From: Macrostomum lignano
Lineage: Eukaryota
DNA length: 64,000 nucleotides
Reading direction: 5' to 3'
NCBI GenBank assembly: GCA_002269645.1
Contig: NIVC01000301.1
Location: forward strand, 480,460 to 544,459
Both the position numbers and the translations under genes were made by a program. This document shows positions 11,423-59,904 of the stretch, one piece after another. Below the pieces are notes generated by a model. The model did not search any database. It was not told the DNA's origin and was given only the letters and a program-made list of their open reading frames with translations. The stretch's first letter is position 1; every line of letters begins with the position of its first letter.

Positions 11423-12266
11423 GGCTCAACGAAGAATTTAAAAAAATGTTTTGTATGAAATGCCCTACTGAGCCGAACTAAGGAAGGATCTTTGCAAAAG
11501 AACTATAATTCTGCCATCAATACTATGGATTTTAGGGTTTTTTGAACTCTTTAAAGAAGAAATTTAAATAAACAATGAAAATTTGACCGAAACAACGCAC
11601 TGAAAAGAAAGAGTGATTTTGTATTTGTGATTTGTGTTTTTAGCAACAGTTTTATGTAGGGCCTGTGTTAGCCAGTGACTGCAGGGGTCTGGCTGTGGCG
11701 GAGAAACAATACACTACTGAAATATGAGAAAATTGAGCTTGAAACATTTTTAGACAATCTTTCAAACACCTCGTAGGTACACGCCTTCTGCATTTTAATT
11801 AATTTTCTTAGCTGAAAGTTTAGGACAAAAGTGACTAAAGTTGATGGTTAAATGATCAATCCCTAGAAATCACCAGGCCCTTCCATATGGCGACTGGACA
11901 AACACGTTAATTACTATTTTTCATTTACCAATGAAAGTGTCTCTGTGACTTCTATGTTTTGCATTCTGCATTTTTTGAATTTTCGGTATTTACCGAGGTT
12001 CAGTGATGAGTAATCTTGCCAGAATGCATTACAGGAACATAAAAGTTGTGAGATATTTTATACTCAGCCTCATTTTCGCTCAGTCTACTTAACTCGTAGT
12101 TAAACAAAGGCTAATTTGCCTCTAATAGCAAGTGTAGATCAAATTTGCTGCTGGCTCCAGGCAAACAGCGGTCTCTTCTGTAAACACGGAACCATGATAT
12201 GTAAGCACTCTTCCATTGGCTACTAACCTAGCCAGCTGTCAGTCAGAACTCCAGCCAGATCCCAAG

Positions 12267-14788: not shown

Positions 14789-14899
14789 AATCTGCAATAG
14801 ATAGTTTAGTAGATGCTACTTAAAAAGGATATTATTCTAATATTTAGATTTCACTTAGGTCTGTAGTTTCAGGTTTGTCTCTTTTTTCAGCCTAGCAAA

Positions 14900-15690
14900 A
14901 TAAGCAAATCTTGTTAAGCTTCTGTTGTTTACCTGATGTAAGTTTTGCACCATACAAGGTCTGTAGTGCACTGTTGTGTCTGGTCTTCCCTTTGCTCTCG
15001 CTTTAGCCTTCCTCCACGTGCCTCGGTGAGGATGTTACAGTCGGCTCCGCTGTCCACCAGCGCCTGCACTGGAGTCGCTTCTACCAGCACGGTGGCAAGA
15101 GCCGCTGCCGCGTTCGTGTCGGAGGCCATCACGGTCAGGCAGAAGACTTCGTCCTCTGCGCCTGAACTGTCGCTGCCGACCCGCAGAGCTCGCATGTCAT
15201 CCGGCCAGGACAGGCAGGCCTTGGCGAGGTGATTTGGCTTGCCGCATCGGTTGCAGGTCTTGCCTACCGCTGCGCTGCAGCTGCAGTGGCCGAAGTTGCC
15301 GCAGCGGGATGCACTTTGGCTGCGTGCGATCGGCTGTCCGCGCGGCTGATCTCTGCGGCTGCTCTGGCGGGCTGCACGGTCGCTGCGCTGGTCTTCATGA
15401 GGCTGGCCTGTGACTCCGCTGCCTCCATGGCCCTGGCCACCCGGACCGCCTGGCCCAGGTCCACGTTGTCCATGGCAATCAGTTGGTCGCGGATCAGCGA
15501 ATCCCGGAGGCCTTCGAATTTGCAGCAGTCTGTGGTATCGTTGAGCCGCCGTAGCCAGTCGTCCAGGGACTCTCCGGTCTGCTGGATGCACAAACGGATT
15601 TGTTTGCAGGTGAAGGGCAAGTTGAGCTGGCTGGTGAAGTGCTCATTGAGAGCACACATGCGATGCCGAGGCACGTGGGGGAAGGCTAAA
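14900..15690 (-). mobile_element. Degraded Ty3/gypsy LTR-retrotransposon gag-protease fragment
   Basis: QQTGESLDDWLRRLNDTTDCCKFEGLRDSLIRDQLI (gag), CNRCGKPNHLAKAC (CCHC knuckle), ALVDSGADCNIL (aspartic protease D-S-G), split over two frames. Confidence 0.85.
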
Positions 15691-15969
15691 GCGAGAGCAA
15701 AGGAGAGACCAGACATAACAGTGCACTACAAAGGTCCATCTGCAGTTCATAAAAATTGGCGTTTCAAATTTTAATTAGAAATAACCCGAAATATAGAACT
15801 CGAAATAACGAAATATTTTTTGATAGTATGAACTACTAAAACGAAAAATTATTCGATGAAATCCAAATTTAAAGAATTTACTTCAAAGTCTTGTGAGTTA
15901 ATTCATTTAGAAATATACGACTCAGCTAACTCAAACTCAGGGCAGAGCGTAAAAATCTCTCGCAATACC

Positions 15970-16500
15970 AGCGTCGGGCACAAGAGGAAACTTGAGCAGG
16001 CTGCCGTTCTGCTGGTCGAAGAGCACCGCCTGGCAGCCCTCCGAGCAGAGGAGGGCACACATGCTCACGTTAGGAGCCTTGGTCAGCGAGTAGAGCGGCT
16101 CGGAATAAGAGCTCAAAGTGGCGACAGTCGGTTTGGTCTCTCAGCAGACCAGCGTCTAAAAATACAGCGCGTCAGAATATGACCCAGTTTCACCTGCCTT
16201 GCTATGAATTGAGCCTATTCAACAGCAACACTGCCAGAGTTTTCGAGATAGGCGAGGCCATGCACCGAGTTGCAGCTGTTGCCGTTGCAGATTTGGGAGG
16301 CGTTGCCGCTGAAGAGTTGATTCGGGAGGTGATCAGTCCCCCGAAAACTCCCACTTCCAGACACTTAAGCCTGGGAACAAAATCAGTGATCACTTACTGT
16401 TGCGGGCTCCTCTTCTTTGTCGCGCGTGTCTGTAGAGCTCGTCTCCTTAGAGCTGTTCCTCCCGGGGTGGTCTTCTTGAAGTCTAGAGTCGGCCGAAAGT
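15970..16500 (-). mobile_element. Possible highly degraded non-LTR reverse transcriptase fragment
   Basis: SKTLAVLLLNRL resembles the LINE RT 'K+L..+LLNR' segment; the surrounding frames are broken. Confidence 0.3.
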
Positions 16501-17279
16501 GAGAGCGTAGCAATTAAATCGACGTCGCAGTATTCCTTCGGGTGCAGAATTCAATGTATTCCTCGAGTGCAGAAATCAATATCAACGATGCGCCCTAATA
16601 ACAAAATCAACTTCAATACGAGGTCCTCCAGAAAGGGCGTCTTCTTCTAGAACTAACGGAATCGGAGTCGTGTGCTCCTATCGGTTAATCTAGGATAACC
16701 AAAATCAATCAAATCGATAATCCTCTAAGGGTATCGGAATCGGTCCGCAGATCCTATCCAATCCCTTAGGAAAAGGGAGGCCTCAAACTCAATAGACTCA
16801 ATAAAATCAACTGAACAGTAACGGCCGGCAATAACAATCGCTCTCAATAATCAAAATAACGAAGACTTGAACAAAGCTTACCAATTGGTGTTTATCTCTT
16901 CCTCAGAGATATAGCCTCGTTGGCTGCTCTTGCAAAGCCCAAGATCTTTGGAGGCTGCTCCGAGTCTGAGATTTCAGCTCGGATTTTTTGTATTTATATT
17001 TATACACAATTTGTCGGCCTTGAGTCGGCCTTGAGCTCAAAACCGGTTTTTTGAAGAGTTCACGAAAGGAATTTTATCATTTGACAGGTGGGGTTTTTGA
17101 ATAGAAAGGGGTGAGACTTGGGTGACATTCAGGTTAACATTTACCATATTTGGAAGTTCTAAAAATAGATGTCGAGAACCGGTTTTTTGAACAATAGCAT
17201 AGCCACTCGCTGTTTGCGTGATATGACTGGTATTACTAAAAATAGAGTATGACACATAGCTATTTTTAAATTTGTATTC

Positions 17280-17643
17280 ATAACTTTATGTTACTACTTT
17301 TAGTAGGCTACTGTGTTTGAAGATCTCTACACCGCTGCACGCTGTGCCGCACTGCGACTCTGGCGCGGATCCCTGGGAGCCATAGGAGAATCCGCAGTAG
17401 CAACCGACTCCAGCCTGCAGACCCAGTGGAGCAGCCAGCCGTGCACAGCTGCAATGTCAAACTGCTAGACTCATAGTTCGGATAATTTCCGTCCTTTTTG
17501 TAGACGCCGAGTGTCGTACTCTTCTCAAGGCCATTAAGGTCTCGTGTGGCATTCACATAGTCCGTGTAGCAGCCCAGGTACTTCACGCTGGTGACTTGCC
17601 GCCCGACGCAAATTTCAAAGGAATGGAGCAGGAGCAAAAGCAT
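17280..17643 (-). pseudogene. Secreted WSC-domain protein, frameshifted/truncated
   Basis: Hydrophobic N-terminus, then YLGCYTD...RDL...SLTLQLCTAGCST. After a frameshift it continues GLQAGVGCYCGFSYGSQGSAPESQCGTACSG, matching the WSC cysteine pattern. The usual Y/F-x-Y-A segment and the final CGG motif are missing. Confidence 0.7.
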
Positions 17644-18399
17644 GCCAGCACAGCCTGATTTGTAAATAGATGGCTACGCGGCATGGTGATGCTCAGAAGG
17701 TTTTAAAATGAATGACACAAAAAGGTACCGTAGAGATGCAGATTGAAGCATCGTTTAGTCTGCTTTATATATGCTTTTTAGTGGAATGCTGCAATCGGCT
17801 CAGCTACACAATAGCTGATGCTGAAGTATTGTGCGTGATTTGCTTTGCTCAATTTAGCGAGTCCAGATTCAATGATAAAAAAGAACAAAAAATTGCTCTT
17901 TCTTGTCTGATGTCGAAGTTGATCAAAGCTGGGATATACAGAAAGTCTACTTTTAAGTTGTATTTGACAATCGAGAAGGCATTCATCTCTGGGATTTGAG
18001 CAAATACAAAAAACAGCTGCTCAGACTGCCGTGAGATTTTCAGAAATTTTCTATTTAACAATACGCGGGCCGCATTTCCGCATCAGATTTTGACAATATT
18101 CTGTCTTTTCGATGCGCGCGATAGCTATATCGAATGCGAAAAATGTCTGCAGGACTCTGGAGAGGAGAGGCTGACTCCCTGTGGATGAGGAGAGCGAATT
18201 GTCGGAAGCTTTTTGTTTTTTTTCTTACCGATTGAAATACGAGAGTAATTTAATGTTCGAAGCTCTAATCCATACAGAGGCAGGTGAATCTCTTTTGATA
18301 CAAGACTCGAACACCCAGCCTGACGCGAATGAATCGCTGGAGTGCAGGGGACTCAACTGCAGCATCTCGTATAGAAGCATTTTTTTATAAATTTGTACC

Positions 18400-18690
18400 T
18401 GAGAGAAAGGTATTTATTGGATCGCATTAGCTTCTGAAGAACAACGTCGATACATGGTCCCGGACGTTGAAGACGTGTATAACCACCAGACCGGTTATCA
18501 TGCTTGCAGAAAGTGCAAAATGAGAACCAAAAACAGATTGCCGAGGCCGACACAACTGTCGCCCATTCAGTGTTTGAAGTTTGTGCATTGCCAGCATCAA
18601 ATGACGGCACATGAAATGATGAAGCCCAGAGTCAGCATTGAAGCTGGTAATGTCAGAAAAATGGATGAGGTGAAGTACTAGATGCAATTA
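18400..18690 (-). pseudogene. Orphan relic of a Cys-loop channel last exon (M3-M4)
   Basis: *YFTSSIFLTL (vs WYFSLAVVMTI) and NTEWATVVSASAICFWFSFCTF (vs NEWKTVGSSADRVFFKAF), with stops and shifts; no upstream exons found. Confidence 0.5.
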
Positions 18691-19482
18691 TAAACTAAAG
18701 CATATTGCTGTCGATCTGCATCTAGCGATCAAATATTTGTGGTGTACTCAATATTGAGTCGAGTGTGCTTACCCGCATGGCAAAATGGCACGCATGATTA
18801 ATTGCACTTCTATTGTTTACCTGTCAATCAGGCAAATTATTCGCTGGTCGCATTGACCATTGCAGATGTAGAGGCCAGGGGTAAAAGCTCGTTATCCATA
18901 AATTAAGAACGTATGAAAGTAAGAACCAGGCTTTAAAAAATTCCGGTTCGCTTCCAAACTAACCTTAAAAACTGGTTGAACAAGAGACTGACTGCCCAAG
19001 CTGCTCGCCTGGCAGTGATGTGTCAATGAGATTATGTGCCAACTTGCCTTTTTTGCCTAGCTCGTAGTACGACGTAAGATGGTGTTTATGGATGACGCAG
19101 CAGGGCAGTCGACTGAAGCGCGTCTCTGAGCCAAGGCTGCAGTGCAGTACACTGGTAGGAACATGAAACTGAAAAAATCACTGCAGCAGCCACTTTGCGA
19201 TTCTCCACTCATCTCAACAGAATGCTCCCCAAAGAGGAACTCAAGGTTGACTGAAGGCAAACACGACAGAACAAATAATTCTCTATTTGCTCTCTTGAAA
19301 CGAGTTTAAAGAGAATGCACCGCTGAGCCAACAGCTCGATACAATAGCTGGAGGCAGGGCTCCGGATGCATCCTCCTGAATATTTAATTGGTGGAAAGAG
19401 TGGTCTCTGGACAAACACGGGCAAAGATGCATAAAACTCCGACTGACTGGTTTTCTCAGAGCTACGCTCGTACTTCGCCTTC

Positions 19483-21883: not shown

Positions 21884-24407
<2,524 letters not shown>

Positions 24408-26216
24408 GTGACCCCCGCTCCGGGAGACTGGCTTCCTGGTTGCTTTCTGGCCAGCATTGGTGGCGGTTCGCGCAAGTCTTTCCTCTGCTAATGAAAATAC
24501 AATTGCTTGCTGGGCAGCCCGTTTCCACCCAGGTTGCCACTGTATTTAGTCAATTTTTTGCGATAGATCCATCTATCGTGTCAATAATTAAGGCTAGTTG
24601 TGTCAGCTTAAATGAATTCATTTTCAGTGCGTACGAGTATCTTCTTGCACACCAATGTGTTTACCGAAGTATGCGGTCCGTGAAATTTGTGTGTACGCTC
24701 GTATCAGGTGATAATTCAATTTTTCCCAGCTTTGCAAATATTTGCGCTACAAATGGAATCTACCCAGATTAATATATAAAATTTTATTGACTATCTAGAC
24801 TATATGATTTGATAGGCTATCACACCAGACTACGGGCTTATAAAACACAGGTAGGCTACTGACACCGGTCGCATCCCGTGATTTTGCAGTCAAAAGTTCT
24901 TTCTAATATTTCATTTATGGTTGATATTGATAAATTAATATTCATTCACTTTAATTTATGCTGATTATGTGTTAAAAGGTTGAATCAAAGTCAATCGCAT
25001 TGTTTATCATCAGCTCAAATATGCGTTGACTGCCTCTCGAGTGCGCATCTCGAATGATTGCTTCTTTTGACGAGACTGGCTGGGCACTCACTAGTTTAGC
25101 GGATAAGCAGCCTACTGCTAAAATCCCTAAATTGAAATTCTGAAACATTTAAGTCTATGGAATCATAGAGACCATAACTGACAACTCATGCAGTTCGAGA
25201 CTGCAACAGGAGCTCAATACTATCCGTGGCGAATCTAGACGAGAGACTAGAGACTGAACATGCGCTTTGTGCCACGGATGACCTAAGCAGGCATGGTAAC
25301 GAAAGCAGGTGTCAATGACTACGGCTTCGGAGGTAATGACCTTGTGGGAGTCAATTAATTGAACGCGACTTTGGATTCGGGTGGGTAGAATTCAGATATA
25401 AGTTTTCAACTATTTTAGCCGATGGCTAGCAGCCGAGTTCCATCAACGCCCTCCCCGAAGCCACACAATTCAACAATTTACAGTAGATGTAAAAAACTTT
25501 CGACGGCTTTAATATAGGAAAACAAAGACAATCGAAAATAACATACAAACAATTAATATTGCTTGGATACACAGAAACGATTTTTAATGAATAGTACATG
25601 TAAATGAAGGATAGGGGAATTAAAATACTAGTATAACGTCAACGTCGCATAGGGACTCGAAGCAGGCACATTCTTATGTCACCGGGTTTGCTACAAAAAT
25701 AGGACTGGCAGATAATTAACGCAATTACAATTAGGACAGGCAACTGTCATTCTTGAGTAAATAGGAAATTTCTAATCTGAAAGTGATCGAGAATTTTTTC
25801 ATAAGATCATATCAACACCTAGACAAAACAACCATAAAAATTGAAGCAAATTTATCTACAATAAGCTTTTCGCTGGACTAAAAAGAAAGCGACGCGTCAA
25901 AGGAAGGCAAACCCAGGCGAGAAAAAAGGGCTCAGTCTGATGCATATCTTCTTCATTTGGTTAATTATGGGTGAATACAAAAAGTTAAAATGGTCCCTTA
26001 ACTCTGCTGAAGAGGCCAGAACTACTGTAAATTAAAATTATCCAACTTAACAAATTCTTTTTCCTTGAGCAGTGGAGTAATATAGGTACAGTTTCTATAT
26101 TTCTTGGATCAATATAGTACCGCAGCGTCAGAAAAATCCGGCTTAAAAAGCCTACAGTCAAACTTACAAGCAGTTGTTCTGTTACGCCATCAAGTCTGTT
26201 TGTTACGCATGAAAGT

Positions 26217-29066
26217 TCATGCTGTCCTTCGCTTTTGAATTTCATCATCGTGAAAGTACATCTGCTTCGCTAGACTTCCTCTGGTCTCGATAGTTTGGTA
26301 CATTTTGGTGCCGTCCGGCTTCTCAACTATTGGTGTGTCCGCCATGTGCGCCGCGAGCTTGTCGACGATCTCCTTCAGATGGAGTCTCCTTCTGTAGTCG
26401 GATATGAACCTGCACAAGTTTTCGATGAAAACTGTTCCTCTCTGGTGCCTGAATGAGGCATCGCCTTGAGAGGTGGAGTACACCTCCAGCAGGTCGGAGA
26501 GGTCTCTCTGATTGGTTTGTCTCGCTCCTCTAGGAGGAGTCTTAATTGCTTGGGCTCTGAGATCCTTCTGCAGACATCGGCAAGCCTGGGTGAAGAAGAC
26601 CTTCGGTTTTCCACGGAGGGAGGGGCAGCTAGTGATCGGATCGATGAGATTTTCCACACTGATGAGCTTCTTACCGGCACTTTCAGTTGCCGGGTTCGTT
26701 GGATTTCTGCCTGAAATGTAGGTTCTCCGTGTATCCATGTCGCTGCGGCCGTGAGCCGACACAATGCAAATAAAGGACGCTTTGGAGCTGTGGTCCTCTT
26801 TCCCTATGTCCTGCATTTTACTTTGAAGTTCTTTGGCTGTAGGATTCGAAATAAGACGGAACTTGTACCTTAAAGTGGTCTGAAAAAGGCTCAATAGCCG
26901 ATTCTGGTCGTACTCAATGGCCACCCTGTGAGCTTCATCGGACCAGATGGAGATGAAAACGACGATGCCGCGATAGCTGGCTCCAGTGATCATGGCAGGG
27001 TATCGCCACGTGCGCATCCTGTTAAAATGACAGTGCATGTTGATTGACGCTTGTCAATATCGTTTTAAGAGTACGCTTTAGAATTAACACACAGAGATGA
27101 CCGGTATAGGGAGTATAATTAGGCTAGGACTGAATATATTGATCCATAGACAGTCTTAAATCTACCAAGAATAAGTGAATGGGTGCTTACAACTTTTTAA
27201 TGAAATCGACCACAAGATGATGTCCCTTCTCGACTGCGAGGTCGATTGCTCTCTGATTGAAGCGATTTTTGTGGTTGAAATTGGCTCCCACTTTTGCTAG
27301 CAGTTGAACCATGTCCAGATGGCCCTTTTCGGCTGCCAAAGTGAACGCAGTGTTTCCATTCGCGTCCGTGTCCTCAAGATAGTTTGGTTTGTCAGCCTCA
27401 CAGTAGGATAGAAAAACCCTTAAAGCCTCCTTTCGATCAAGCTCGACAGCAAGGTGCAGAGGTGTTTTACCATCACTATTTTTGCACCCTAGACAGGCAT
27501 CCCCGCGTTCCTCCAGCAACAACTGAAGAAATTGGGCGTTTTGAAAGTGAACGGCCAAATGTGCCGCCGAATTTCCAGAGTTGCATTCCAGGAAAACATT
27601 TGATCGGTGTTTGAGCAAGTGCGTCACTATTTGTTTACGGCAGCGCCGTCGGATGGAACAAAGCATGAGAGGCGTGTGACCGTTCTCATCCTCCATGCAG
27701 TTTGGATCGGCCCCACATTGGAGAAGCTTCAAGACTGAATCCTGGCTGTTCGCCTCGACTGCGTGATGCAAGGCCGTCATTCCGTTCGTATCGCGCAGGT
27801 CCACGTGAGCACGCGCATCAACAAGATCCTGAATCATGCGAACGCGGTTGAACCTGGCTGCAGTCATGAGCAGACTGCACTGCTGCTCGTCACCGAATGA
27901 ATCCACGTTGTAAACCGTGCCTAGCAACTTTTTGAATTGATCTCGACAATTATTTTGAATAAGTTTGTACAAATTGCCTAATAGAGATGGATCTGAAATT
28001 GAGGGTTTATCTTCTGTTATACTGTTGCAATTCAGTCAGCACTATGTCTGTACTAGAAAAATTTGAAGTTGTTCTTTTCCATTGCAGATTTAATACTCAC
28101 CGCTTCTTAAGTCGGTGAGCTGCCGAACAATTTGCGATTGAGACCTAAAACAATAATTTTCTGTAGGTCAGTAAATACGGTACATAAGAGAATAAAAAAG
28201 TTGGTTTGCTAGCCACCGTCTCACCGTTTATCTTTGTAGAGCTTCTCGAGATATCGGACAATGTCCTGCCTCCCTCGCAGTCGGGCAATGTCGAGCGCTG
28301 TCATTCCTGCCCGATTTCGGTGCTCAATGTCCGCATTGGCTTCTTTCAGGAGTTTCAAATGCCGCACGCCACCACACCTCCCCGCCATTGTGAATGCGGT
28401 CTCTCCGTCGGTGCTGACTTTGTCTATACCTTCTTTCATTCTCTCGAGCAGAAGTTCAGTAATGATGGTAGATTTAAGCTTCGAAGCTAAAATCAGTGGC
28501 GTGCTGCCATTGTCATCAAAAACCGTCAGTTTGCACTTGTCGCTCTCGATGATCATTTTTGCTATCTCGACAGCATTGTTCTCGATGGCAATGTGCAATG
28601 CGGTTCTTCTGTTCTTGTCGCGCTTTCCTAAGTCAATGTCCGCATTAATAAGCCATCTGGCCAGTACGATATCTTTAGCTCTATCCTCACTCCTATTGTC
28701 GCAGCAGTACATAAGAGCATTGAACTCTTGGTTTTTATCCTGGACAGAAATATTCACGTCAAACTGCTCCCTTTCATCGACCAAGACTTTCGCGGCTTTC
28801 AGCTTACCAAACGAAGCTGCAAGGATCAGCGGAGTGCAGCCCCCTCCTCCTCTCTGACTGTTTGGGTCAGCTTTCTTCTGCAGGAGAAAGCGAACAACCT
28901 CTGGATTATCGCTCATCACAGCGAGGCCTAGCAGAGTCATGTTCGTTATTTTGTCGAAAAAGTTTGCTCCACGTATTCCGTGGGTGCGAATATACTTTTG
29001 CAGCTCTTGCAGGTCTCCATCGTAGGCAGCCTTCGACTGCCGCGGCAACTTGTCCAATTGGGACAT
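26217..29066 (-). CDS. Ankyrin-repeat-caspase fusion protein 1 (~829 aa; ANK block, linker, ANK block, caspase)
   Basis: Exons 29066-28225, 28144-28101, 27992-27191, 27018-26217; GT-AG, phases 2/1/2, total 2490 nt in frame. About 8+8 ankyrin repeats (TPLILAA, TALHIA, TAFTLAA). Caspase domain with KEDHSSKASFICIVSAHG (His codon 26751-26753) and GKPKVFFTQACR (Cys codon 26580-26582). Confidence 0.88.
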
Positions 29067-29984
29067 AGCCCGAAATGTCCTTCAGTGAACAGCAACGACG
29101 CCCTTCGAATCGGAGCATTAGGCTCCTACAGTTATATGCGCTCTTGTAGACAATAAGATTTGTAATGAGTGCATTTATATAGCCACTTTACAAATTGGAG
29201 CTAGACACTGAGATGAGTGGCAATTGTAGTATGTAAATCCAAGACCCCTTGAACAATGGCAGTAAAACCCTCGAGCAAGTGTCTGTCCCGCTATGTTGGC
29301 AAGACTATTATTGCGAGCCAGACGATGCTCAGCACTTGAGCCGATGCGAACATATTGCAAAAGTGCTGCTCTCTTTGCATCTCAAATCTCTCATGGCTGT
29401 TCCTAAAAGTGTAAGTATTTTGGAATATTACGCTGCAGTGACGCAGAGTTCCTTTTTTAATCCAATTCTGTGCTAGTGAGTCACTGCCTAATTGCTAATT
29501 TTATATTCACTGAACCGTCCTTTTAAAACTGCAAGTGTCATTTGATATGTCATTCCACAATGTTAGCTATTTAAAAATCATGACATCATGAAATCATGGC
29601 TTAAACCGCATGACAGTATTGTAATTTTGATTCGATAGGTCTGGGCTTGAGTTATTTCGAACTGCTGATGACTGAATGTCAAAAAGCATTTTTGGTGCAT
29701 CTTAGCTAGCCTTGCATCTCCCTAACTTACTCACGCTGTCACGCAGCACAGAAGTCAAGCAGTGTCGTTGAAGATAAATTACCGTAAGAAGAAAGAACCA
29801 TGAGCATGGAAAAGTGCCGTCACTCGTGGCTTCAGGGGTTTAAGTTGACCTGCGCTAGCTTCAGGGGCGCCAGCACCGTGGTTACCAGAAGGGGCGCTAA
29901 AACTATAAGGGAGGGCGACATATCCCGAGATACCTTTCCAGCCGATTAAGGGGCAAAGTGAAGGGGCAAAGCCTCTCTCACTCT

Positions 29985-30380
29985 CGTTAGGAGCATGCTT
30001 GGACTCAACCGCAGGGACATCATGGCGGTATCCACGACTCTCTCAGGTCAAGGGCGCCTCGCTAGGCATCGCTACTTCCAAAGGAAAAATGCGCGGAATA
30101 TGAGGAATGCCTGAGTTGTTGAGAATGCGGAGCACTTCATCTGTGAATGCCCCACCTTTACTAGAGACAGGCTTCACTACCTCGGCACACACCCGGATCT
30201 CTCCGACGTTTTCAAGCCTGAGTGACCATCCACCCCCTGGACTGACACTGGCATCACCGGATTTTCCCGTGCGGCACCGCACGCAGCACCAGCTGCCCGT
30301 GACCGCCAGGGGTTGGCAGAATGGGCGGCGAAGCCTACCGCAGCATCCTGGATGCCCTGAGCGCCTACAGCCAGGTAAAG
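29985..30380 (+). mobile_element. Degraded 3' end of a non-LTR retrotransposon ORF2, same family as 8510-9030
   Basis: GLNRRDIMAVSTTLSGQGRLARH...CLSC...ENAEHFICECPTFTRDRLHYLG; nucleotide similarity to the 8.5-9.0 kb copy. Confidence 0.72.
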
Positions 30381-31031
30381 TAAATCGAGAAGAGTGCAAA
30401 ACACTTTTTTTATAGAAATTGTAACGAATAGAATAAACAGTAAACAGTTTAACTCGGCTTGTAAATTCCACATCAAATCCATATATTTAAACATTCGTTT
30501 TATATAAATTTGGTTAGAAGAAATTGCAAAGTAGGTATTAACTATACGGTAGTTTATACCTAATCTTTTTATCGTAGCGATACAGTAAAATTTTACAAGC
30601 CATTTTAGATTGTGTACAAATTCAAAAGAAAGAAGAATAATATGTTTCGCATCGCATCAACTGAGAGATTTTTTAGTCAAGAGGCTAAGGGTATTGGCTT
30701 GGATACAATTATATTGCTTGCAAAGGCAAGCAAGCAAAGGCAATAGAGATATAAAGCATTAGAAGCGTCTGGTTTAAAATAACTGAATCGAGGATAGCGC
30801 TCACATCGCCGTAAGGCCCAGTAAAGAGAGTTTTTCTATGTGAAGAAGCCTTTATTGCCACGCCTATAGTGCCCGCACTAATAAAAAGGCCGTTCTATAA
30901 AATCATTCGGAACTATTTCTGTCCATGACGAATTGTTTCGTTAGTTAAGCTAGAGCCCGTTAGTTAAGCCTCCTTACCGAAACTGTTGTATTGAGTAGAA
31001 AAGTTTAAATGTTCTAAAACTCTAGAATGAT

Positions 31032-33774
31032 TCACGGAAAGAAGAACACACGCTTTGGCAGGTTACCCTTGATTTGAACAGTTTGGTAGTTCTCGTCTTC
31101 ATCGCTGAAACTGACGGACTTCTCGTTGAGGTGGTCCGCAAGTCTGTCAACAATATCTCGCAAATGCTCCGTGTCCATGTACTCCCACATATACTGGCAG
31201 AACTCCTGCAAGAAAAGCGTGCCTCTTTGGTGTCTGAAGGCCGCATCGCCGCGCGAAGTCGCATGCACTTCGAGCAAGTCAGCTGATTGTCTCTGGTTTG
31301 GTTGCCTTGTCCTTTTAGCCGTTTTGACCGCCTTTTGCCTGAGACCGGTCTGGAAGGTTCGGCACGCCTGATAAAAGAAAATCTTCGGTTTGCCTCTGAG
31401 AGTTCGGTTATTCGATATTGGCTCAGTGAAGTTTTCCAGACTGATCAGCTGCTTGCCGGCGCTTTCGGTTCTGGGGTTGATGGGTTCCATGCCACACATG
31501 TAGTCCTTGTTTGTCTCTTCGTCACTGCTTCCGTGGGACGATACAAAGCACACAAATGAGGCGCTCGATGAAAAGTCTCTTTCCTGCAAATCTAGCATGA
31601 GCTCCTGCATTTTCTTGGCCGTTAGATTCGTATACGGAATAAACTTATATTTGAGTTCCGTTTGGAACAGCTCTCGAACACTGTTCTCATCGTAGCCCAT
31701 TGCTAAACTGCGGTCACTATATGGGTCATTTGCAATGTAGATGCAAGTGCCCGGATGGCTGCTGCCCGGCATCTTGAACGGGTATCGCCCAATGATTTGC
31801 AGTCTGCAGGTGTTTATAAACAAAGCGATCAAAATTATGACGTTTACGGTCTTGTGTTTATTACAAGAATGACACAAATTAGAAACAGAACTGAGAGTGC
31901 TCACCGTTTTTTAATAAACTTGATTACATCGTCACTTTTTGATACCTTGATAGCGTCTTCACTATGCTTATTTTTGTGGCGCAAGTCGGCTCCAGCATCG
32001 GCCAGAAGCTGAACACTTCTCAGGTCTTCCATCTTAGCAGCCAATGTAAAAGCCGTGTTGCCATCCGAATCCGTCGCTTCCAGGAAATCTCGAAGCTGAC
32101 TGTCTCGTTCACTCTCGGGCATTTTCGCTACATCAACATTAATTTTTCTTAAAATCGCTTCTAGCGCCTCCCGGCACTTGAGACTCACTGCCAGCATAAG
32201 GGGAGTGAACAAGTCACTGTTTGTGTTTGAGAGGCTTTCTTTGGCATTTTGGCGTAGCAGTTGTTGCACTAAGTATTTTTTATTGGTGCGTACTGCGAGA
32301 TGGATCACAGTTTCGTTAGAACGCTTGCATCGTTGAGTTAAATTGATATTGTAACGTAGAAGGAGTTTCGCTGCTTCGATGAGACGTGCTTGAACGGATT
32401 TCTTCTTGCACTCTGTCAACTCGTTCATGCACATCATCAGTGGAGTGAAGCCATCAACCGAGTCTTTAATATTTGGATCTGCCTTCAGTCTCAGTAGCTC
32501 CTCTGTGATATTGCGGCTTTCCGCTAGCACGGCGTGATGCAGCGTTGTCCGGCCGTTCTCGTCGGTTTTGTTCACATCGGCACCCTGCTTCACGAGATAT
32601 TTCACGACAGCTATGAACTTGGAGTCAACGGCAGCCTTGAGAAGATCTGTCAGCAGTTTTTTATTTAAAACTTCTTTATCTCGCAGGATTCTGACAAGGT
32701 CTTGAATTTCACGAAAACCGTTCTTCCTATCACTCGTCCTTTTTATCAGATCGTGCAGCGCGCTTTTAATTTCAGCGTCTGAAAATCCGGAATGGAGAAA
32801 AAAGTAGCTTGGGAATCTAGCAGAATTGAAAGAAACCCGGTTCATAAAAACATACCAGTCCGCCTGTCTCTTTCCAGTTTGATAACTGCGGCTAATTCAC
32901 TTGTTGTCTCATCGGAAGGTCTGCGGTCTGTATGACTGGCAGATGCAACAGATCTGGATTGCTGACTTCTCTGGGTGCAAGGACCACTAGAAAGTACCGT
33001 TGTACGACCATTACTTCTAGCGGTCCTTGTTTGAGTGTTCTCTTCCGACCTGCAGTTTTAAATTCATTGAGTACATGCTTGACTCTGATCTTTTCCGTAG
33101 TACACAATTTCAAAGTACGCATAAATACATTTAGTTTCGTACCTGGCGCTCACAGACAATGATCTCAGGTACTTAGCTATCGCGCCTCTATTCAGACGTT
33201 CAGCGATAGCGAGTGCAGTCTCTCCGTTGTTATTCTTATGAGAAATGTCGACACCAGCTTTGTATAGAAGTTTGACCTGTTCCAGCTTACCGCGAGCTGC
33301 CGCAACTGTAAATGCCGTGTCACCATCGTCGTTTTTCCAGTTAATCGATGCCTGCACATCGGAATGCAACAATAAAACCTTAGTCACTGTTTGAAGCCCC
33401 TCTACTGAAGCCAGAATCAAAGGTGTATTTTTCTTATTATTCGCCGTCGTCAGGCATTTGCTGCACTCGCTGCTATCAATAAGCATGCGAACTATCTCCA
33501 GAGCACGAGTTCCAATTGCAATATGCAAAGCCGTGCTACCCTCTTTGTCCTGCTTGTCAAGGTCAATGCCTTCTTTAATAAGAAGCTCAGCTGTCTGGAC
33601 ATTCACTGCCAAAAGAGTCTGGACAAAAGAGTTTGAGACTGCTCTGGTGAGTAGGTGCATGTCGCTTTTCTTGTCATAGTACCTCGCTTTCACCTTCTTG
33701 TTTTTAATGCATCTTTCAAGCTGCTCGAGATTTCCAGAATCAACCAACTGAAAAAGAGTTGGTCGTGAGCTCAT
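31032..33774 (-). CDS. Ankyrin-repeat-caspase fusion protein 2 (~823 aa)
   Basis: Exons 33774-33143, 33049-32856, 32778-31905, 31803-31032; GT-AG, phases 2/1/2 as in copy 1, total 2472 nt in frame. Caspase motifs FVCFVSSHG (His 31533-31535) and GKPKIFFYQACR (Cys 31362-31364). Confidence 0.88.
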
Positions 33775-35255
33775 GGCTTGTCAGTATAGCTTTATGTTTG
33801 TCAGAAATGATGTTCTGGCAACCTAACTCATATCCAGCCCCCCCTTTTAAGTGCGCAGACAGTTCGCACAACCGAATGAAAAATTACCGTTAAATTTTCT
33901 CGCCCCTCTAATAATAGAATTTTTGCGTTTTTCCAGGTATAATTGAAGTAGTTTAGAAACAGTAGCAGCTGCAGCGGTAGTCAGATGAGTCAGACATTTA
34001 TCTAAGAATAGAAGTGACTCAGAACCTTGTCTGAAGTCTATTACGCAGCTGACTTAAAGTACAAGCGTAGGTCGCTTTTTGTGGGGCTCTATCACGGATC
34101 AAGTAAAATCGACCAAAGGTTCTTGGAGGCACATTATTAAACTTACAAGTGTAACGCATCTTGGCTCTAGATGCACCTAAAAGCACCTGATGACAACTGG
34201 AAGACTTAGTCGTCCTAAAAACCAACGTCCTTGAGCCATTGCATTTGCGGAGCCATTCATTCTACGAGACTCGGCAAACTCGAATTTGCACATCTGTGCA
34301 AGCAGTGCTGACACCTCCTGGCATCGCGGTCAGACCACCAGTCTGCGGATGACCTCGGTTGGCTTGGACAGCCGGGCCTCGGCCGCGGCAGCCATGATCA
34401 GCACAATGGCAGGGACACACGGAGGGAAGCGCTGCAAGTTTACGCTCATATTTTTGTGTTTTGGAGCAGAAAGTGGCGGCTTTAACCTGCAGGCGGTAGA
34501 GGCAACAGTAAATATTGAGCATCTGTAGGACAATAGTCATCATGATGTACATTATCTCCGAAGTAAAGATAAATTATCCAACAAAATTCAATAACAACAA
34601 CAGATTCAAGAATAGCATTTGATGACTAATCCGATAACATGTTCCACGGCAAGTTGCCTGTCCTTGCCAGCACCATTCCCAGTGAGTCTCTAACATGATC
34701 TCCAATATGATTTTGATTTTAAACTTTAACATTAAAATTTCAAAGATGCTAATATCTCCTACAATGAAGAGTGACGCAGTGTTGTAACTAATGTGATGCT
34801 TCTGACTTCAAATAATCACAGTTGTCTGCTTCTATATTTATTTCCTGCACCGATGACTAACTGTAATCTGGGGTGCGCTTTTCTGATCTATGCGACAGGC
34901 TTTTCATTTTCATAACTTGAAATCACTTTAATAGCCACTGTAGCCGCTATATTAAAAAGATGATTTGTGCCCCGACTGACCGAAACTCCCAATCGAAAGC
35001 TGAGTTAGTTCCGCTGTGTGAAGCAGGAGTGAGCAGGGTGAGCAGTGAGTCTAGATAAGCCAGCAATTTGCAAACTGATGGCCCACTTCCTACACAGTAA
35101 AATAGGAGTGCTGACGCTGGGGCAGCAAGTGCGGAAGTGTGCACAGAACTGGCGGATATAAATTCACAAAATTTGAAAGGAATTGTCGTTACTGTTTGCT
35201 TATATTTTTCTCGTTGATTTTCTGCTTCATTCTACCATTGGAAACAGAAGACGGC

Positions 35256-36956
35256 ATGCTGAAAGCAAACTTTTTCATTTTGTTACTCATTTTCACTGGA
35301 TGCAACTCAGGTAGGCGTTGCATGGGAGCGCATGTTGCTCGTGTTTCCACAAACATTTTTCTGATAGTCACGATGCCGAATTCTGGCTTGTACGACTAAG
35401 GCTAGCTCAAGAGTCAGCGAACTTGGCAGAACTGCCTCCCAGTTGGTTGTGGAACGATGTCGCCAGGTGTCCGCCAACAACCATCTTGCCATATAGTAAT
35501 CACAAGGACAACTGAAGCAACATATACACAGGACGCGACACTCGCGTTTTATGTGAAAAGTTTTGAAGGCCACTTTCGCCGAAAAATACACTACGGAGAG
35601 AGGAATTTTTCATTTTTTCAGCACAAAAATTGTTCTTGGTTTTGATAGGACGCAGACACAATGTTCATCTTTTGATATGTTGTGCCTTTCTTATTGCTCT
35701 ATTGATATTTATAAAGCTTTTTGTTCAGAAAATTAGGATGCTGTTAATTCTTTATTCTACGTACACTTCCTGTACCTATAAAATATTAAAAAGCATGGAA
35801 CACCTCGAATCTTTGGTTTTATGAATTGATTTTATCATCTCTGTTACACATATTGTTACACAGTCGGCTAAGAATAACAAAATAGATTCATAAAATTAAT
35901 GAGCTGAGGCTTTTAGGCACCGGACATTTACAATTGTTCGTAGAATAAAAAATTAACACAGAATCCTAATTTTCTAAACGAAAAGCTTTATGAATATCGA
36001 TAGAGCAATAAGACAGGCACAGCATATCAAAAGATGAACTTTGGTCTGCCTCCTATCAAAACTAATAACAAATTTTTGTGCTGAACAAATGAAAACTTCC
36101 TATCTCCATAGTGTATTTTTCGGGCGAAAAGTGGCCTTCAAAACATTTCCAGAAACTTCGAATGTCGCGTCCTTCTACTTAAGACTTCTCCTTGACTTAT
36201 CATAGTTATAAACAGTACTTATGTCTCTATGACTGCTGCAAATTGGTTCACCATAAACCCTGAAATGGACGGTAACCTGATTTGATTCTGAAGTCAAGTC
36301 TTGTTGGCCATTTTACAGACGCACACAGAATTCACCATACGCGAAAATTCTTCACCATTTTGCAATCAATTGCAATTGATATTTCAGATTTAGCGTTGTT
36401 AGGAAACGTCAGTAACTCCAACTGGTGCACGGACGTGATGAACCCCACGATGGACTATCTGCTCGGCAGCAGCTTCCTTCGGTCTGCTATCAGGAACGAG
36501 TCGATTGCCACGGATACGTTCAGCGCCATGGGCATTACAATTTCCAATATGCAGCTCAGTGGCGTTGAGAGGCTGGAGCGGTACGGGAATCTCTACACCA
36601 TCGTGCGTTCCGGGCAGTTCCTGATTGTGCAAGGCGCTATCCGCGCTGTCGAAGTGTCCACCAGCTTCATGGCCAAGTTCTCCTTCTTCAGTCCAGACGC
36701 AATCCAGTTGGTGACGCGAGGCGCCGTCATTCAATTCGGCTTGCAGGTCCGACTTCAGACTGGTGAGAGAGCGGCGCTGATGTCGCTTGAAGTGACTGAC
36801 CTGGGCCGCGTTGAGGTCGCCGGCTCGGGCCGGCTGAGCTCGATAATCCGCAAGGCGACGGGGAATTCGCTGACGCGTAGCCGCATTTCCAAGGCGATCG
36901 GCAGTGTGCTGAGGCTCACGATCACTGAGAAGCTTCAGCAGAATCCGCTGCTGTGA
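35256..36956 (+). CDS. Secreted ~207-aa protein, probable TULIP-superfamily (group-7-allergen/JHBP-like) lipid-binding fold
   Basis: Signal-peptide exon 35256-35310 (MLKANFFILLLIFTGCNS, phase 1) joins in frame to 36388-36956. LSGVERLERYGN resembles the GLSxLxRxGD motif of group-7 allergen proteins, followed by alternating beta-strands and a C-terminal amphipathic helix. The gene model is better supported than the fold call. Confidence 0.7.
35503..36194. mobile_element. MITE/foldback element with long TIRs, diverged copy (in intron of the secreted-protein gene)
   Basis: Ends CAAGGAC.../...GTCCTTCTACTTAAGACTTCTCCTTG; arms align with the element at 38692-39388. Confidence 0.75.
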
Positions 36957-39659: not shown

Positions 39660-40889
39660 TAGAACAGTGAATTTGTTATTAAATAAGGATTACATGCCAA
39701 ATCTATTCTTTCTAGAAGCATGCATCGATAAAATTATTTGATTTAATAAAATATATCAATACAATCCATTAATATTTGTTGTCGCTTGCGTAATCTATAA
39801 GTGTTTCTATATATTTTAGACTTTTTCGCAAAAAATTATCTGGCAATGCTCTTCCAAAAGACGAACATTCGATCTGCTTTTGCTTTTTAGTAATAAGTAT
39901 CGCTATTTTTCTGTAAAAATGAACTAGCTAGCTGATTCACTATGCATTTTGAGGCACATTTATATTAACTGCTGCTCCTCACATAATTTCGAAGCAAGTA
40001 CCCGATCGCGATGTTTATTTTATATTTGATGCAGAGATTATGTATGTTTTTTTAAGTTGTCAAGTCGGTAGAAACGAGAATTTAAAAGAGAGGTTTGTTT
40101 TACGCTTTAAATAATGCGTGTCAATTTTTTAAACAGTTGATTTCATTGAAATGGACCAGCCGACCCTATTGTTTGATATCGATGCTTTCGTTGTCATGAT
40201 TGTTTTTCAACCTTCAGGATCCACGAAAAGCCAGAAAAGAAGTTTAATTGTTACAAATTCTTGTTAGTATTCTGGAACGAACACCTGGTGCCTAACAGTG
40301 AGTTGTTGAAGAAAAAATTAAAATAAAGAGTAAAGACCCCAACCAACCAAAGACAAAAATCAAAACTTAACAACTTGGCTAGAATAGAAATGTATAAACT
40401 AAAAACAAGCTATCAATTGTGGTGCATCCCATGTGTTAAATTTGTGATCTCACTAAACTGTTTTGATTAGGAATAAATTTTTTACTGCCTTTTTAAATGT
40501 TATTTGTCATATAACTTCAAGATGTTATTTGAGAACTGATAGATATATAAAAAGACCTATTTTTGGCTTCATTCAAGAACAATTAAAAACTTCTAATAAT
40601 TTATATAATTTAAAAAATACAACCTATTATAATTTCTAATTATGGCTCAGAATGCTAAAATAAGATCAGAATCCTAAGCCAGGCTAAGCCAATATAATAA
40701 TAGCATAATAGTAAATAGGCCTACAGTATTTTTTCAGTCAATTAGCAAATACTAGCAATCTTCGCCCCCCGATGGGGGACATCTGGATAGAATCTCTGTT
40801 TTCTACAAGTAACAAAAAGACAGCCAAAAATCCTTCAAAAAGACAATAGACAAACTGCTCAAATGAAGTGCATTGCAAAAAGAAATCAT

Positions 40890-41432
40890 CCCAAGACTGC
40901 AAGCATCCCCCAGATAGCAAGCATCCCCAAGATAGCAAGCATCCCCAAGATAGCAAGCATCCCCCAGATAGCAAGCATCCCAAGACTGCAAGCATCCCCA
41001 AGATAGCAAGCATCCCCCAGATTGCAAGCATCCCCCAGATAGCAAGCATCCCCAAGATAGCAAGCATCCCCCAGATAGCAAGCATCCCCCAGATAGCAAG
41101 CATCCCCCAGATAGCAAGCATCCCCAAGATAGCAAGCATCCCCCAGATAGCAAGCATCCCCAAGATAGCAAGCATCCCCAAGATAGCAAGCATCCCTCAG
41201 ATAGCAAGCATCCCCCAGATAGCAAGCATCCCCAGATAGCAAGCATCCCCCAGATAGCAAGCATCCCCAAGATAGCAAGCATCCCTCAGATAGCAAGCAT
41301 CCCCCAGATAGCAAGCATCCCCCAGATAGCAAGCATCCCCCAGATAGCAAGCATCCCCAAGATAGCAAGCATCCCCAAGATAGCAAGCATCCCCCAGATA
41401 GCAAGCATCCCCCAGATTGCAAGCATCCACCA
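40890..41432. repeat. 19-21-bp minisatellite
   Basis: Unit GCAAGCATCCCC(C/A)AGATA, ~26 copies. Confidence 0.97.
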
Positions 41433-41524
41433 GACAATAAGTAGCTAGTGCGACAATTTCCTTAGCATTATAGCGGCTCCTTTAAAATTCGCTTACTTTT
41501 ACGTTTGAAATTGTGTATCTTTTA

Positions 41525-43588: not shown

Positions 43589-44929
43589 CAAGTGTTATTT
43601 CAAAAGTTCATAGAAAGTGATAAAAAGCAAGCAGATATCAAAAAGCTGGTTGCAACACATTAATCAGCATCTCAATTTGATCTCTCAATGTAATTGCCAC
43701 ATATACACATATGTATACATATATACACATATATACACATTCGCATGCGCTATAGCCAGCTATCAAAGCAACCCTTAAAATCAGCTTTTTCAATGGAGTT
43801 GAGCTGCTCATTCACAGTAAAAATCAGCTCATCACAAGTCAAACAACTTTCATATAGCGGCTGCTTGATTTTCAGAAATAACCAAAAAACACACAATGCC
43901 AGATCCAGTGAATACGACAGAGTGCTCAGCAGCTTGATGCTAGAAGCATGAATGTCTTGCACTGTGTTGTTCATTGTGTGCGCAGGTGCGTTATTGTGAT
44001 GTAGGAAGTAGTGGCATAGCTTAGCTTTGCCATGGCCAGCTGCAATGGAATTGAACACAATGAGCAAAAAGCTGGTCATGTACCAATCAGATGTCACAGT
44101 GCAGCCTTTCTCAATAGGCACTAAGGCTACAATGCCTCTGGGTGAGAAGAAAATTGCAAACATGATTTTCCCAGCTGACCTCATCTGCTTTGCCTTTTGC
44201 AGAGGTGGGGCTCCTTTCAGTGACCAAAACATTGACTGTGATTTAGTTTGCGGGTCGTACTGATAACACTAGGCTTCATCACCTGTGACAATATTCTGAA
44301 AGTTTGCAGATGCTCCATCTTTTAACTGATCCAGGAAATTTTTGTAGAAATCAATTCTCTGCTGCTTCTGCTCAGGCAAGAGGATTTGTGGCACCCATTT
44401 GACAGCTTTCTTGGTGACACCAAAATCTTCATGCAAGATCCTCCAAATCAATGTGGCATCAATGCCCAAACTCTCCTCCATCTTCTCAATTGTTAGTCTT
44501 GCATCCTTGTTCAATGCTCACTGCACAGCAGCCACATTTAAGGAGTCTGTTGATGTTCTTGGATGACCATCTCTTGGCTCATCAGCCAGATTGAAATGGC
44601 TGGCTCTAAAGCAACCAAACCACTTGTGTACAGTGCTAAGCGATAGAGCTTCATCTTGCAATACAGTCTTCATCTTAGCAGTAGCTTCATTTGCGCTAGA
44701 GCCTCAATGAAACAGAAACATCATTATGGCTCTTGACTGCTCCTTGGAGAATGCAGGAAATGCAGTGGGGGGTTCAGAGTTTGATTGCAGATTTCTGGTG
44801 GCCATTTCAATTAATTTTGCTGAAAATTTAGCTATAGGCTTTGGGTATATGAAATAGTATTTGTGAAAAGTTTCAAGGCTATAGCTTAATGCAAAGATGG
44901 CTTTTCTAAAACTTTTGAAATACCCCTTG
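43589..44929 (-). mobile_element. Full-length but inactive mariner (Tc1/mariner) transposon, ~1.34 kb
   Basis: TIR CAAGTGTTATTTCAAAAGTT / AACTTTTGAAATACCCCTTG, flanked by TA. Transposase remnants WVPQIL, IVTGDEA, HHNNAPAH (Asp lost), YSLDLALCVF (Asp lost); stops and frameshifts. Confidence 0.92.
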
Positions 44930-47747: not shown

Positions 47748-48229
47748 GTGTAACCCCATCGGCTGGCCCAAATCTGCAGCTTAACAGTTCAGCACTTGGC
47801 TATATAAAAGCCATCAACTAACCGCGGTCACTCTTCCAATTTACTAAACTGTAAGGATTTCAAAGGCATTGAGCAAATACTCCCCGATTGTGGAAATAGA
47901 AATTGAGTTTTGCAGCTGGCGCCTGTGCATTAGTGCATTTCCTCTTCGAGCGCTCCTCTCCCCGCTGCCCCGCTGGGAGCGCCACTGGGTCGCTTTGAGT
48001 GGCCTGCTGATGCCGGGGAGGGGAGGCTGTGGCGAGAATGAGATGAGGCTGAGTGGCCAGCTCTGGGCCTTCAATTTATTAGCCTAAGCCTGCTGGCTGT
48101 TGGCGGGGCTTCGGCGCGACAGTTTCTTCAATTTGTTAGGGGAAGGCCTTCGATTCTGCTTTGCGCATGTAGCTGATGGCGCTGTGGCCTCTGCCGCCTT
48201 CAATTGATCAGCTGCTGATGCTCATAGTT

Positions 48230-48910
48230 GCTCTCATCTACTCTCATCCTTCTCTGTCTACTCCCACTCTTGTCTGCGTTTAATCTCACCCTTCTCTGTC
48301 TACTCCCACTATTGTCTGCGTCTACTCTCATCCTTCTCTGTCTACTCCCACTCTTGTCTGCGTCTACTCTCATCCTTCTCTGTCTACTCTCACTCTTGTC
48401 TGCGTCTACTCTCATCCTTCTCTGTCTACTCCCACTCTTGTCTGCGTCTAATCTCACCCTTCTCTCTCTACTCCCACTCTTGTCTGCGTCTACTCTCATC
48501 CTTCTCTGTCTACTCTCACTCTTGTCTGCGTCTAATCTCACCCTTCTCTCTCTACTCCCACTCTTGTCTGCGTCTACTCTCATCCTTCTCTGTCTACTCC
48601 CACTCTTGTCTGCGTCTAATCTCACCCTTCTCTCTCTACTCCCACTCTTGTCTGCGTCTAATCTCACCCTTCTCTCTCTACTCCCACTCTTGTCTGCGTC
48701 TACTCTCATCCTTCTCTGTCTACTCCCACTCTTGTCTGCGTCTAATCTCACCCTTCTCTCTCTACTCCCACTCTTGTCTGCGTCTAATCTCACCTTCTCT
48801 GTCCACTCCCACTCTTGTCTGCGTCTAATCTCACCCTTCTCTCTCTACTCCCACTCTTGTCTGCGTCTAATCTCACCTTCTCTGTCCACTCCCACTCTTG
48901 TCTGCGTCTA
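48230..48910. repeat. 42-bp minisatellite
   Basis: Unit CTACTCCCACTCTTGTCTGCGTCTACTCTCATCCTTCTCTGT, with a variant ...CTAATCTCACCCTTCTCTCT. Confidence 0.96.
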
Positions 48911-59771: not shown

Positions 59772-59821
<50 letters not shown>

Positions 59822-59904
59822 CAGACAGACAGACACACAGAGACAGACCAGACAGACAGACCAGACAGACAGACACACACACACAGACAGGCAGACACAG
59901 ACAG

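Follow-up and report, generated by a model that had tools for sequence, protein, structure and literature searches.

Tandem ankyrin-caspase genes in the free-living flatworm Macrostomum lignano

Flatworm caspases with an ankyrin-repeat (ANK) pro-domain were described in 2024, under the name of ANK caspases, as a monophyletic, platyhelminth-specific group whose sister group is the DED caspases and for which an initiator role was proposed (PMC11463336). That study credits the first notice of such proteins, in Schistosoma, to Lee et al. 2014 (Trends Parasitol). Its neodermatan ANK caspases come from Schistosoma, Echinococcus, Taenia and others, and there is also an Alitta virens ANK caspase. Support for the grouping of ANK with DED caspases is weak in the published tree (posterior probability, PP, 0.61). 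ANK caspases are further said to occur in parasitic flatworms (Neodermata) alone and to be missing from free-living species, Macrostomum lignano being credited with only a caspase that has a kinase-like pro-domain; this sole comparative study links the proteins to a parasitic life and puts them forward as biology specific to parasites (PMC11463336). Here we consider two genes of M. lignano, a free-living flatworm (Platyhelminthes, Rhabditophora, Macrostomorpha), that lie head to tail on the minus strand at 33774-26217 of a 64,000-nucleotide stretch of contig NIVC01000301.1 (assembly GCA_002269645.1, positions 480,460 to 544,459; hereafter the window).

Gene 1 and gene 2 are tandem, transcribed paralogs of an M. 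lignano ANK-caspase family. The published restriction to parasites does not hold, as free-living M. lignano encodes ANK caspases: ANK repeats and a Peptidase_C14 domain are predicted together in PAA85923.1, PAA85924.1, PAA68042.1, PAA63849.1, PAA53038.1, PAA93441.1 and PAA68165.1. These predicted proteins contradict the distribution claim of PMC11463336 and not membership in the architectural class. An earlier, sequence-only reading of the window had put the pair forward as a candidate new class, which it is not, since the architecture had already been described as ANK caspases (PMC11463336) and both genes were already in GenBank and UniProt. That reading had itself allowed that the architecture might belong to a widespread, described family; described it is, but it is not widespread outside flatworms. 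Its remark that no animal caspase bearing an ankyrin pro-domain has been characterized is still literally true, no family member having been functionally characterized. The genome scan is thus a correct re-discovery of annotated genes, and what is new is small: a corrected taxonomic distribution and a divergent tandem subfamily, with QACRC and QACRT active-site motifs, in a genetically tractable flatworm.

Two transcribed genes joining ankyrin repeats to a caspase

Models of both genes were rebuilt from the splice junctions of the sequence-only reading, and every donor and acceptor it had proposed proved to be in place (Table 1). All six introns are GT..AG, with phases 2/1/2 in gene 1 and gene 2 alike (80, 108 and 172 nt in gene 1; 93, 77 and 101 nt in gene 2). 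The spliced coding sequences (CDSs) are single open frames of 829 aa (gene 1) and 823 aa (gene 2), which upholds the earlier proposal that ANK and caspase open reading frames (ORFs) join in frame, in those phases, into proteins of about 825 aa. ORF finders split the genes because reading through the phase-2 GT(A/G)AG donor gives an in-frame TAA or TGA; in gene 1, read-through of intron 3 meets an immediate in-frame TAA. Exon 2 of gene 2 matches that of gene 1 in position and phases but is longer, and an AATAAA lies 176 nt beyond the gene 2 stop.

The spliced gene 1 product is identical, from first to last residue, to PAA85923.1 (BOX15_Mlig019599g2, UniProt A0A267GIQ4), and the gene 2 product is likewise identical to PAA85924.1 (BOX15_Mlig017129g1, UniProt A0A267GKK4). 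These consecutive accessions come from one 698,385-bp contig, and GenBank and UniProt name them hypothetical or ANK_REP_REGION proteins. The NIVC00000000 annotation draws solely on transcripts, assembled de novo or from RNA-seq guided by the genome, with ORFs called by TransDecoder (PMC5730564), and an exact match to such a transcript-only annotation therefore provides RNA support for the ANK-to-caspase splicing. The concern that transcripts might stop after the ankyrin exons is not borne out, as the transcript-derived CDSs join these exons to the caspase exon as predicted. Older, independently made UniProt models use the same junctions (marked by slashes): A0A1I8JJC9 has those around gene 1 exon 2 (KDKR/SQSQ..LRS/DPSL) and the one before its caspase exon (IKKL/MRTW), and A0A1I8JJZ0 has the boundary junction of gene 2 (KKR/LQII). 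A literature search on the gene identifiers (Mlig019599 and the others) found no paper.

In both proteins Pfam identifies Peptidase_C14 (E about 1e-25) next to ankyrin families, and nothing else at E<=0.01. At that threshold neither protein has a match to CARD (PF00619), DED (PF01335) or Death (PF00531), and Pfam finds no kinase-like domain in either. This is the death-fold-free ANK-ANK-caspase architecture that had been read from the sequence, and it is the arrangement by which ANK caspases were described, namely an ankyrin pro-domain before the protease and no CARD or DED (PMC11463336). The CARD or DED pro-domain that defines death-fold initiator caspases (caspase-2/-8/-9/-10, Dronc, CED-3) is lacking from both. 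The pro-domain is ~560 aa long. An iterated repeat hidden Markov model (HMM) counts 13 ankyrin repeats for gene 1, of which 6 lie in the block before the small exon 2 and 7 in the block after it, together with 1-2 degenerate or capping units; the first block (residues 1-281, 6 detectable repeats) is encoded by exon 1. In gene 2 the same approach detects about 10-11 repeats (4 + 6-7). The count of 14-16 given earlier is therefore about correct for gene 1 and slightly too high for gene 2. Based on this domain composition, the bipartite ankyrin array appears to stand in place of the DED or CARD pro-domain of apical caspases. A single-sequence AlphaFold prediction of full-length gene 1 (predicted local distance difference test, pLDDT, 40.9) was unusable for ANK-protease packing. 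As had been noted, the paralogs are strongly diverged yet both open, with 37% identity over 773 aa (47% within the protease domain) and both CDSs uninterrupted.

The protease domain looks catalytically competent. That of gene 1 matches caspase-3 at E=1e-16, and the M. lignano family profile reaches E=2e-51 in a PDB search in which caspase-3/-7 score highest. An AlphaFold2 model of the gene 1 protease domain, built on a 63-sequence alignment, has a pLDDT of 90.7 and a predicted template modeling (TM) score, pTM, of 0.90, and its top Foldseek matches are caspase-7/-3/-6 (probability 1.00, TM 0.7-0.8). By these Pfam and structure results the proteins are caspases (MEROPS C14A, Pfam PF00656), of the caspase/hemoglobinase alpha-beta fold with p20 and p10 contiguous. 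The SAHG/SSHG and QACRC/QACRT motifs of genes 1 and 2 align with caspase-3 His121 and Cys163, and the His-Gly/QACR dyad reported earlier is thus intact in both. Also kept in both genes are the oxyanion Gly of His-Gly, the Gln-Ala-Cys-Arg core, the Arg207 equivalent and a KPK motif. The S1 pocket, which binds P1 Asp, has in gene 1 Arg (L1), Gln and Arg (L3) all in register, including the Arg64 equivalent; gene 2 has the Gln and the L3 Arg, and its L1 Arg lies one residue earlier, aligned to a gap. The fifth residue of the canonical QACRG pentapeptide, Gly in 98% of relatives, is Cys in gene 1 and Thr in gene 2; both genes also have R-x-A for R-x-G, have lost the IINN Asn, and carry, between catalytic His and catalytic Cys, an insertion of 9 residues (ENLIDPITS / ENFTEPISN). 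The inter-subunit linker is short and basic, without an internal Asp in gene 2, and no obvious Asp site separates pro-domain from protease in either gene. The pair is only 25-28% identical to every other caspase and forms a long branch.

A second copy of the entire tandem (window about 36000-24000) lies on NIVC01001427.1 with 96.8-98.2% DNA identity, spanning 2283-15052 of the compared stretch of that contig against window 24000-36000; this duplication fits the known redundancy of the DV1 genome (PMC5730564). The 1.5 kb between the genes (window ~31011-29553) is far less conserved between the duplicates (72-84%, gapped). The gene 1 duplicate, PAA68042.1, is intact, annotated and 97% identical. 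That of gene 2 lacks an annotation and shows three indels in its coding sequence; because each of them falls within a homopolymer run, we dropped its reading as a three-frameshift pseudogene, and the indels are probably long-read assembly errors, not decay. Compared with PAA68042.1, gene 1 has a ratio of nonsynonymous to synonymous divergence (dN/dS) of 0.29, with dS at 0.038, close to the intron divergence of 0.042, and the synonymous excess is significant (p=2e-4). By domain, dN/dS is 0.33 in ANK block 1, 0.32 in ANK block 2 and 0.24 in the protease; for the gene 2 protease domain it is 0.17. Gene 1 is under purifying selection across all its domains, and the similar constraint on ankyrin repeats and protease suggests that the fusion protein works as a unit.

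Relatives within and beyond Macrostomum lignano

In an exhaustive HMMER scan of 1.84 billion representatives, no more than three proteins scored below 1e-30. Within the best 150 of its 2768 matches, ANK repeats occur in M. lignano proteins only; no neodermatan or annelid ANK-caspase is found among these 150 or in two word-indexed profile searches, which returned M. lignano ANK proteins and ordinary caspases only. The environmental relatives P0200, P0223 and P0279 were set aside, having no ANK sequence upstream. A caspase-8-like character of the family was also rejected as firm evidence: the enrichment for caspase-8 in the word-indexed search arises largely from the word prefilter, and the same profile ranks caspase-3/-7 first against the PDB. 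In P0158 (ENA ERZ28496113 ctg4636), the closest unnamed relative of the M. lignano family, an ORF that encodes a DED lies 3.4 kb upstream of the caspase ORF, and P0158 is, as predicted from these two ORFs, a eukaryotic DED-caspase.

Within M. lignano, the proteins with ANK and Peptidase_C14 form at least five lineages. Lineage A comprises the window pair and their duplicates, lineage B PAA63849.1, PAA53038.1 and A0A1I8F2E4, lineage C PAA93441.1, lineage D PAA68165.1 and lineage E A0A1I8J1I0. In lineage E (A0A1I8J1I0 / A0A1I8JID0) the active-site motif reads QAGRG, the catalytic Cys being replaced by Gly, which suggests a pseudo-caspase within the family. Lineages B-E share the ANK + Peptidase_C14 composition of the window pair, to which they are 25-33% identical, but their motif is QACRG (QAGRG in E), their ANK arrays are shorter and single, and they lack the 9-aa insertion that follows the His.

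A phase-2 intron directly upstream of the protease domain is common to subfamilies A, B and C, the three that were mapped onto genomic DNA. Subfamilies B and C have an additional phase-0 intron inside the protease domain (KFK/ASVCP, KFK/SSVCR), where the window genes have none; the 9-residue insertion of the window genes lies three residues downstream of that position. The boundary-intron donor of subfamily B is GC, not GT. An intron of the subfamily C gene (Mlig024060g1) carries the pol ORF of a long terminal repeat (LTR) retrotransposon, with reverse transcriptase (RVT), RNase H and integrase, which is why the gene extends over 16 kb. In a neighbor-joining tree, bootstrap support is 100% for A, 100% for B-E and 62% for their union, with A on a long branch; given that union value and that branch, we rejected the tree as a placement among caspase classes. 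A single ANK-caspase fusion followed by expansion is favored, not proven, by the shared boundary intron together with this weak tree signal.

These relatives bear on when the fusion arose. With an expanded, transcribed and selectively constrained ANK-caspase family present in a free-living flatworm, its origin likely moves before the split of Macrostomorpha and Neodermata, or else the fusion arose more than once. A far-reaching version of this history, which we rate as a long shot, would make ANK caspases, rather than an adaptation to parasitism, an ancestral, flatworm-wide rhabditophoran invention that was lost in planarians, expanded in Macrostomum and used as adaptor-free, ANK-mediated sensor-proteases in a cell-death or innate-immune pathway. 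If true, such a pathway would be without counterpart in flies, nematodes and vertebrates, and it would be testable with the transgenic and RNA interference (RNAi) tools of M. lignano.

Elsewhere in the window are an exon of a cys-loop receptor, fragments of transposons and a gene for a RhoGEF (Table 1), none of which hints at a function. One of the transposon remnants combines a CCHC zinc knuckle with a retropepsin-like 'LVDSGAD' motif in a gag-like ORF, and the other is a mariner-type transposase fragment (PF01359). Long tandem or low-complexity arrays account for spurious ORFs, 150-620 aa in length, on either strand. GC content is high (0.5-0.6) in the 3' third of the window, where GC skew swings to extremes, from -0.38 to +0.45. 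Outside M. lignano, on the metagenomic ENA contig ERZ24794429 NODE_6277, a caspase-like ORF of 274 aa precedes an NB-ARC/NACHT + LRR ORF of 859 aa on the same strand, a layout that looks compact, operon-like and prokaryotic, with an NLR-like protein beside a caspase-like protease.

Table 1. Positions of the features discussed (window coordinates unless another sequence is named).
Feature	Position	Strand	Remarks
Gene 1 (Mlig019599g2, PAA85923.1) exon 1	28225..29066	-	start codon 29066-29064
Gene 1 exon 2	28101..28144	-	44-nt linker exon between ankyrin blocks; entered at phase 2, left at phase 1
Gene 1 exon 3	27191..27992	-	ankyrin block 2, 7 repeats, residues ~334-563
Gene 1 intron 3	27019..27190	-	172 nt, GTAAGC..AACAG, phase 2, ANK/caspase boundary
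Gene 1 exon 4	26217..27018	-	complete caspase domain (p20+p10) and stop codon
Gene 1 catalytic codon His652	26753-26751	-	
Gene 1 catalytic codon Cys709	26582-26580	-	QACRC
Gene 2 (Mlig017129g1, PAA85924.1) exon 1	33143..33774	-	start codon 33774-33772; ankyrin block 1, 4-5 repeats
Gene 2 exon 2	32856..33049	-	194-nt linker exon, Ser/Thr/Arg-rich, low-complexity
Gene 2 exon 3	31905..32778	-	ankyrin block 2, 6-7 repeats
Gene 2 intron 3	31804..31904	-	101 nt, GTGAGC..TGCAG, phase 2, ANK/caspase boundary
Gene 2 exon 4	31032..31803	-	complete caspase domain and stop codon
Gene 2 catalytic codon His657	31535-31533	-	
Gene 2 catalytic codon Cys714	31364-31362	-	QACRT
Boundary and internal introns, subfamily B or C	4370/4913, 5270/5357		in one stretch
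Boundary and internal introns, subfamily B or C	18349/18418, 18775/18963		in the NIVC01000028.1 stretch
Subfamily C gene Mlig024060g1	3001-19388		in the NIVC01000028.1 stretch
LTR-retrotransposon pol ORF in an intron of Mlig024060g1	6257-8125		
P0158 locus	5948-6598 and 10001-11293		ENA ERZ28496113 ctg4636
Caspase-like and NB-ARC/NACHT + LRR ORFs	251-6128		ENA ERZ24794429 NODE_6277
Ion-channel ORF	10334-10993	+	PF02931 (neurotransmitter-gated ion-channel ligand-binding domain) at E=3.5e-10; a probable single exon of a cys-loop receptor gene
Transposon remnant	14929-15716	-	
Transposon remnant	43750-44232	-	
Dbl-family RhoGEF exons	59143-63500	+	broken up by GC-rich low-complexity repeats
RhoGEF DH-domain pieces (PF00621)	59.6 and 61.3 kb	+	
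RhoGEF PH, SOS1/NGEF-type (PF22697)	62.7-63.1 kb	+	E=1.5e-11
Tandem/low-complexity arrays	22464-22940, 40738-41437, 48200-48965, 52970-54838, 57373-58094, 59678-61309		

How the ankyrin array may act

We propose, with slightly better than even confidence, that the ankyrin array of the window proteins acts by recruitment and induced proximity. The protein would work in the cytosol as an Asp-specific cysteine protease of the apical kind, with a long pro-domain, and its ankyrin solenoids would form a protein-protein recruitment module that binds a partner or scaffold. Partner binding would raise the local concentration of the protease, which would then be activated by induced proximity or dimerization. 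Such an enzyme would most likely be placed upstream of cell-death or stress signaling. Activation of the gene 2 product would probably be independent of Asp-directed autoprocessing, which is probably dispensable because its linker is short, basic and without internal Asp. For the pair in general, a basic linker poor in Asp speaks against such autoprocessing being obligatory.

Several points weigh against this proposal. Executioner caspases-3/-7 top both the sequence and the fold rankings, and the inter-subunit linker is executioner-short; because the searches favor executioners, only the long pro-domain and the weakly supported published tree argue for calling these proteins initiator-like. 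Near-universal residues are altered (QACRG to QACRC or QACRT, R-x-A, the lost IINN Asn and the displaced L1 Arg of gene 2) and the branch is long, which means that neither full activity nor Asp specificity is guaranteed. The dN/dS of gene 1 is built on only 42 substitutions, and a literature search returned no functional, interaction or expression-pattern data on any ANK caspase.

Some of these observations would also fit a different role, which we regard as unlikely, in which an executioner-type or non-apoptotic caspase uses its ankyrin array to localize the enzyme, to select substrates or to auto-inhibit, with no activation platform involved. Caspase-3/-7/-6 are the best sequence and structure matches, the short inter-subunit linker is executioner-like, and the absence of an Asp site between pro-domain and protease means that the ankyrin array probably stays on the active enzyme. 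However, the published tree joins flatworm ANK caspases with DED caspases and not with executioners (PMC11463336), P0158 has an upstream DED exon, and the gene 2 linker offers no internal Asp for upstream caspases to cleave.

The altered active site raises the further, improbable alternative that one or both paralogs are catalytically weak and, like cFLIP, modulate other caspases by heterodimerization. Its attraction lies in the non-canonical QACRC and QACRT, the loss of several near-invariant residues, the displaced L1 Arg of gene 2, and the precedent of a Cys-less member within the family (QAGRG in A0A1I8J1I0). Against this, both genes retain the catalytic His and Cys, the oxyanion Gly, the Gln and the Arg207 equivalent; protease dN/dS is low in gene 1 (0.24) and in gene 2 (0.17), and the gene 1 protease is modeled confidently as a caspase.

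The sequence-only reading had put forward a self-contained, adaptor-free sensor-protease, possibly of innate immunity or cell death. In the form of a one-protein innate-immune sensor-effector, whose ankyrin array would bind a small-molecule or pathogen-derived ligand, in the way RNase L binds 2-5A, and thereby dimerize the protease without an adaptor, we consider this quite improbable. Long ANK arrays do lie directly against the protease with no other domain between them, and the family has expanded and diversified, a catalytically dead member included, in a pattern often seen in immune genes. The ankyrin blocks are also less conserved between the paralogs than the protease (37% identity overall, 47% in the protease), but dN/dS over the gene 1 ankyrin blocks (0.32-0.33) gives no sign of positive selection. 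The usual targets of ankyrin arrays are proteins and not small ligands, which counts against a direct sensor, as do the lack of an RNase L-like pseudokinase dimerization module, of a known ligand and of immune-linked neighbors within the window. An artefact, in which the ANK and caspase ORFs belong to separate genes or were chimerically mis-annotated and the GT..AG joins are coincidental, as separate entries from ORF finders and the immediate stop on intron retention might suggest, is next to impossible: the spliced models and the transcript-derived CDSs are identical, two 37%-identical paralogs agree in architecture and phases, the architecture recurs in at least three further M. lignano lineages (the two mapped sharing a same-phase boundary intron), and purifying selection is uniform across domains.

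Comparison with RNase L and described caspases

RNase L is an effector enzyme that is activated by dimerization, and the window genes resemble it in having an ankyrin array N-terminal to an effector enzyme. This likeness is an analogy only: homology is limited to generic ANK repeats, and the ligand-binding ankyrin array of RNase L is coupled to a pseudokinase dimerization module, whereas the window proteins have no kinase-like domain by Pfam. Executioner caspase-3/-7 provide the best sequence and structure match and have a similar linker length and the S1 Arg/Gln/Arg (with the L1 Arg displaced in gene 2). In executioners the pro-peptide is short and activation comes about through cleavage at linker Asp sites; the window genes, in contrast, have a 560-aa pro-domain and a basic linker with few or no Asp.

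With caspase-8 and the other DED initiators, the published sister group of ANK caspases (PMC11463336), the window genes share a long non-catalytic pro-domain, which the initiators use for recruitment. Caspase-8 also leads the named matches of the family profile in the word-indexed search, in part as an artefact of the prefilter. The window genes differ from these initiators in having no DED and a much shorter inter-subunit linker. Because transgenesis and RNAi are routine in M. lignano, the activation of a caspase that is free of death-fold domains should become experimentally approachable. The likeness to the neodermatan ANK caspases is one of architecture as published, and it may reflect either common descent or convergent fusion. 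The window pair differs from them in belonging to a free-living species and in its QACRC and QACRT motifs, and shares with them the ankyrin pro-domain, the p20/p10 protease, the lack of CARD and DED, and the phylum.

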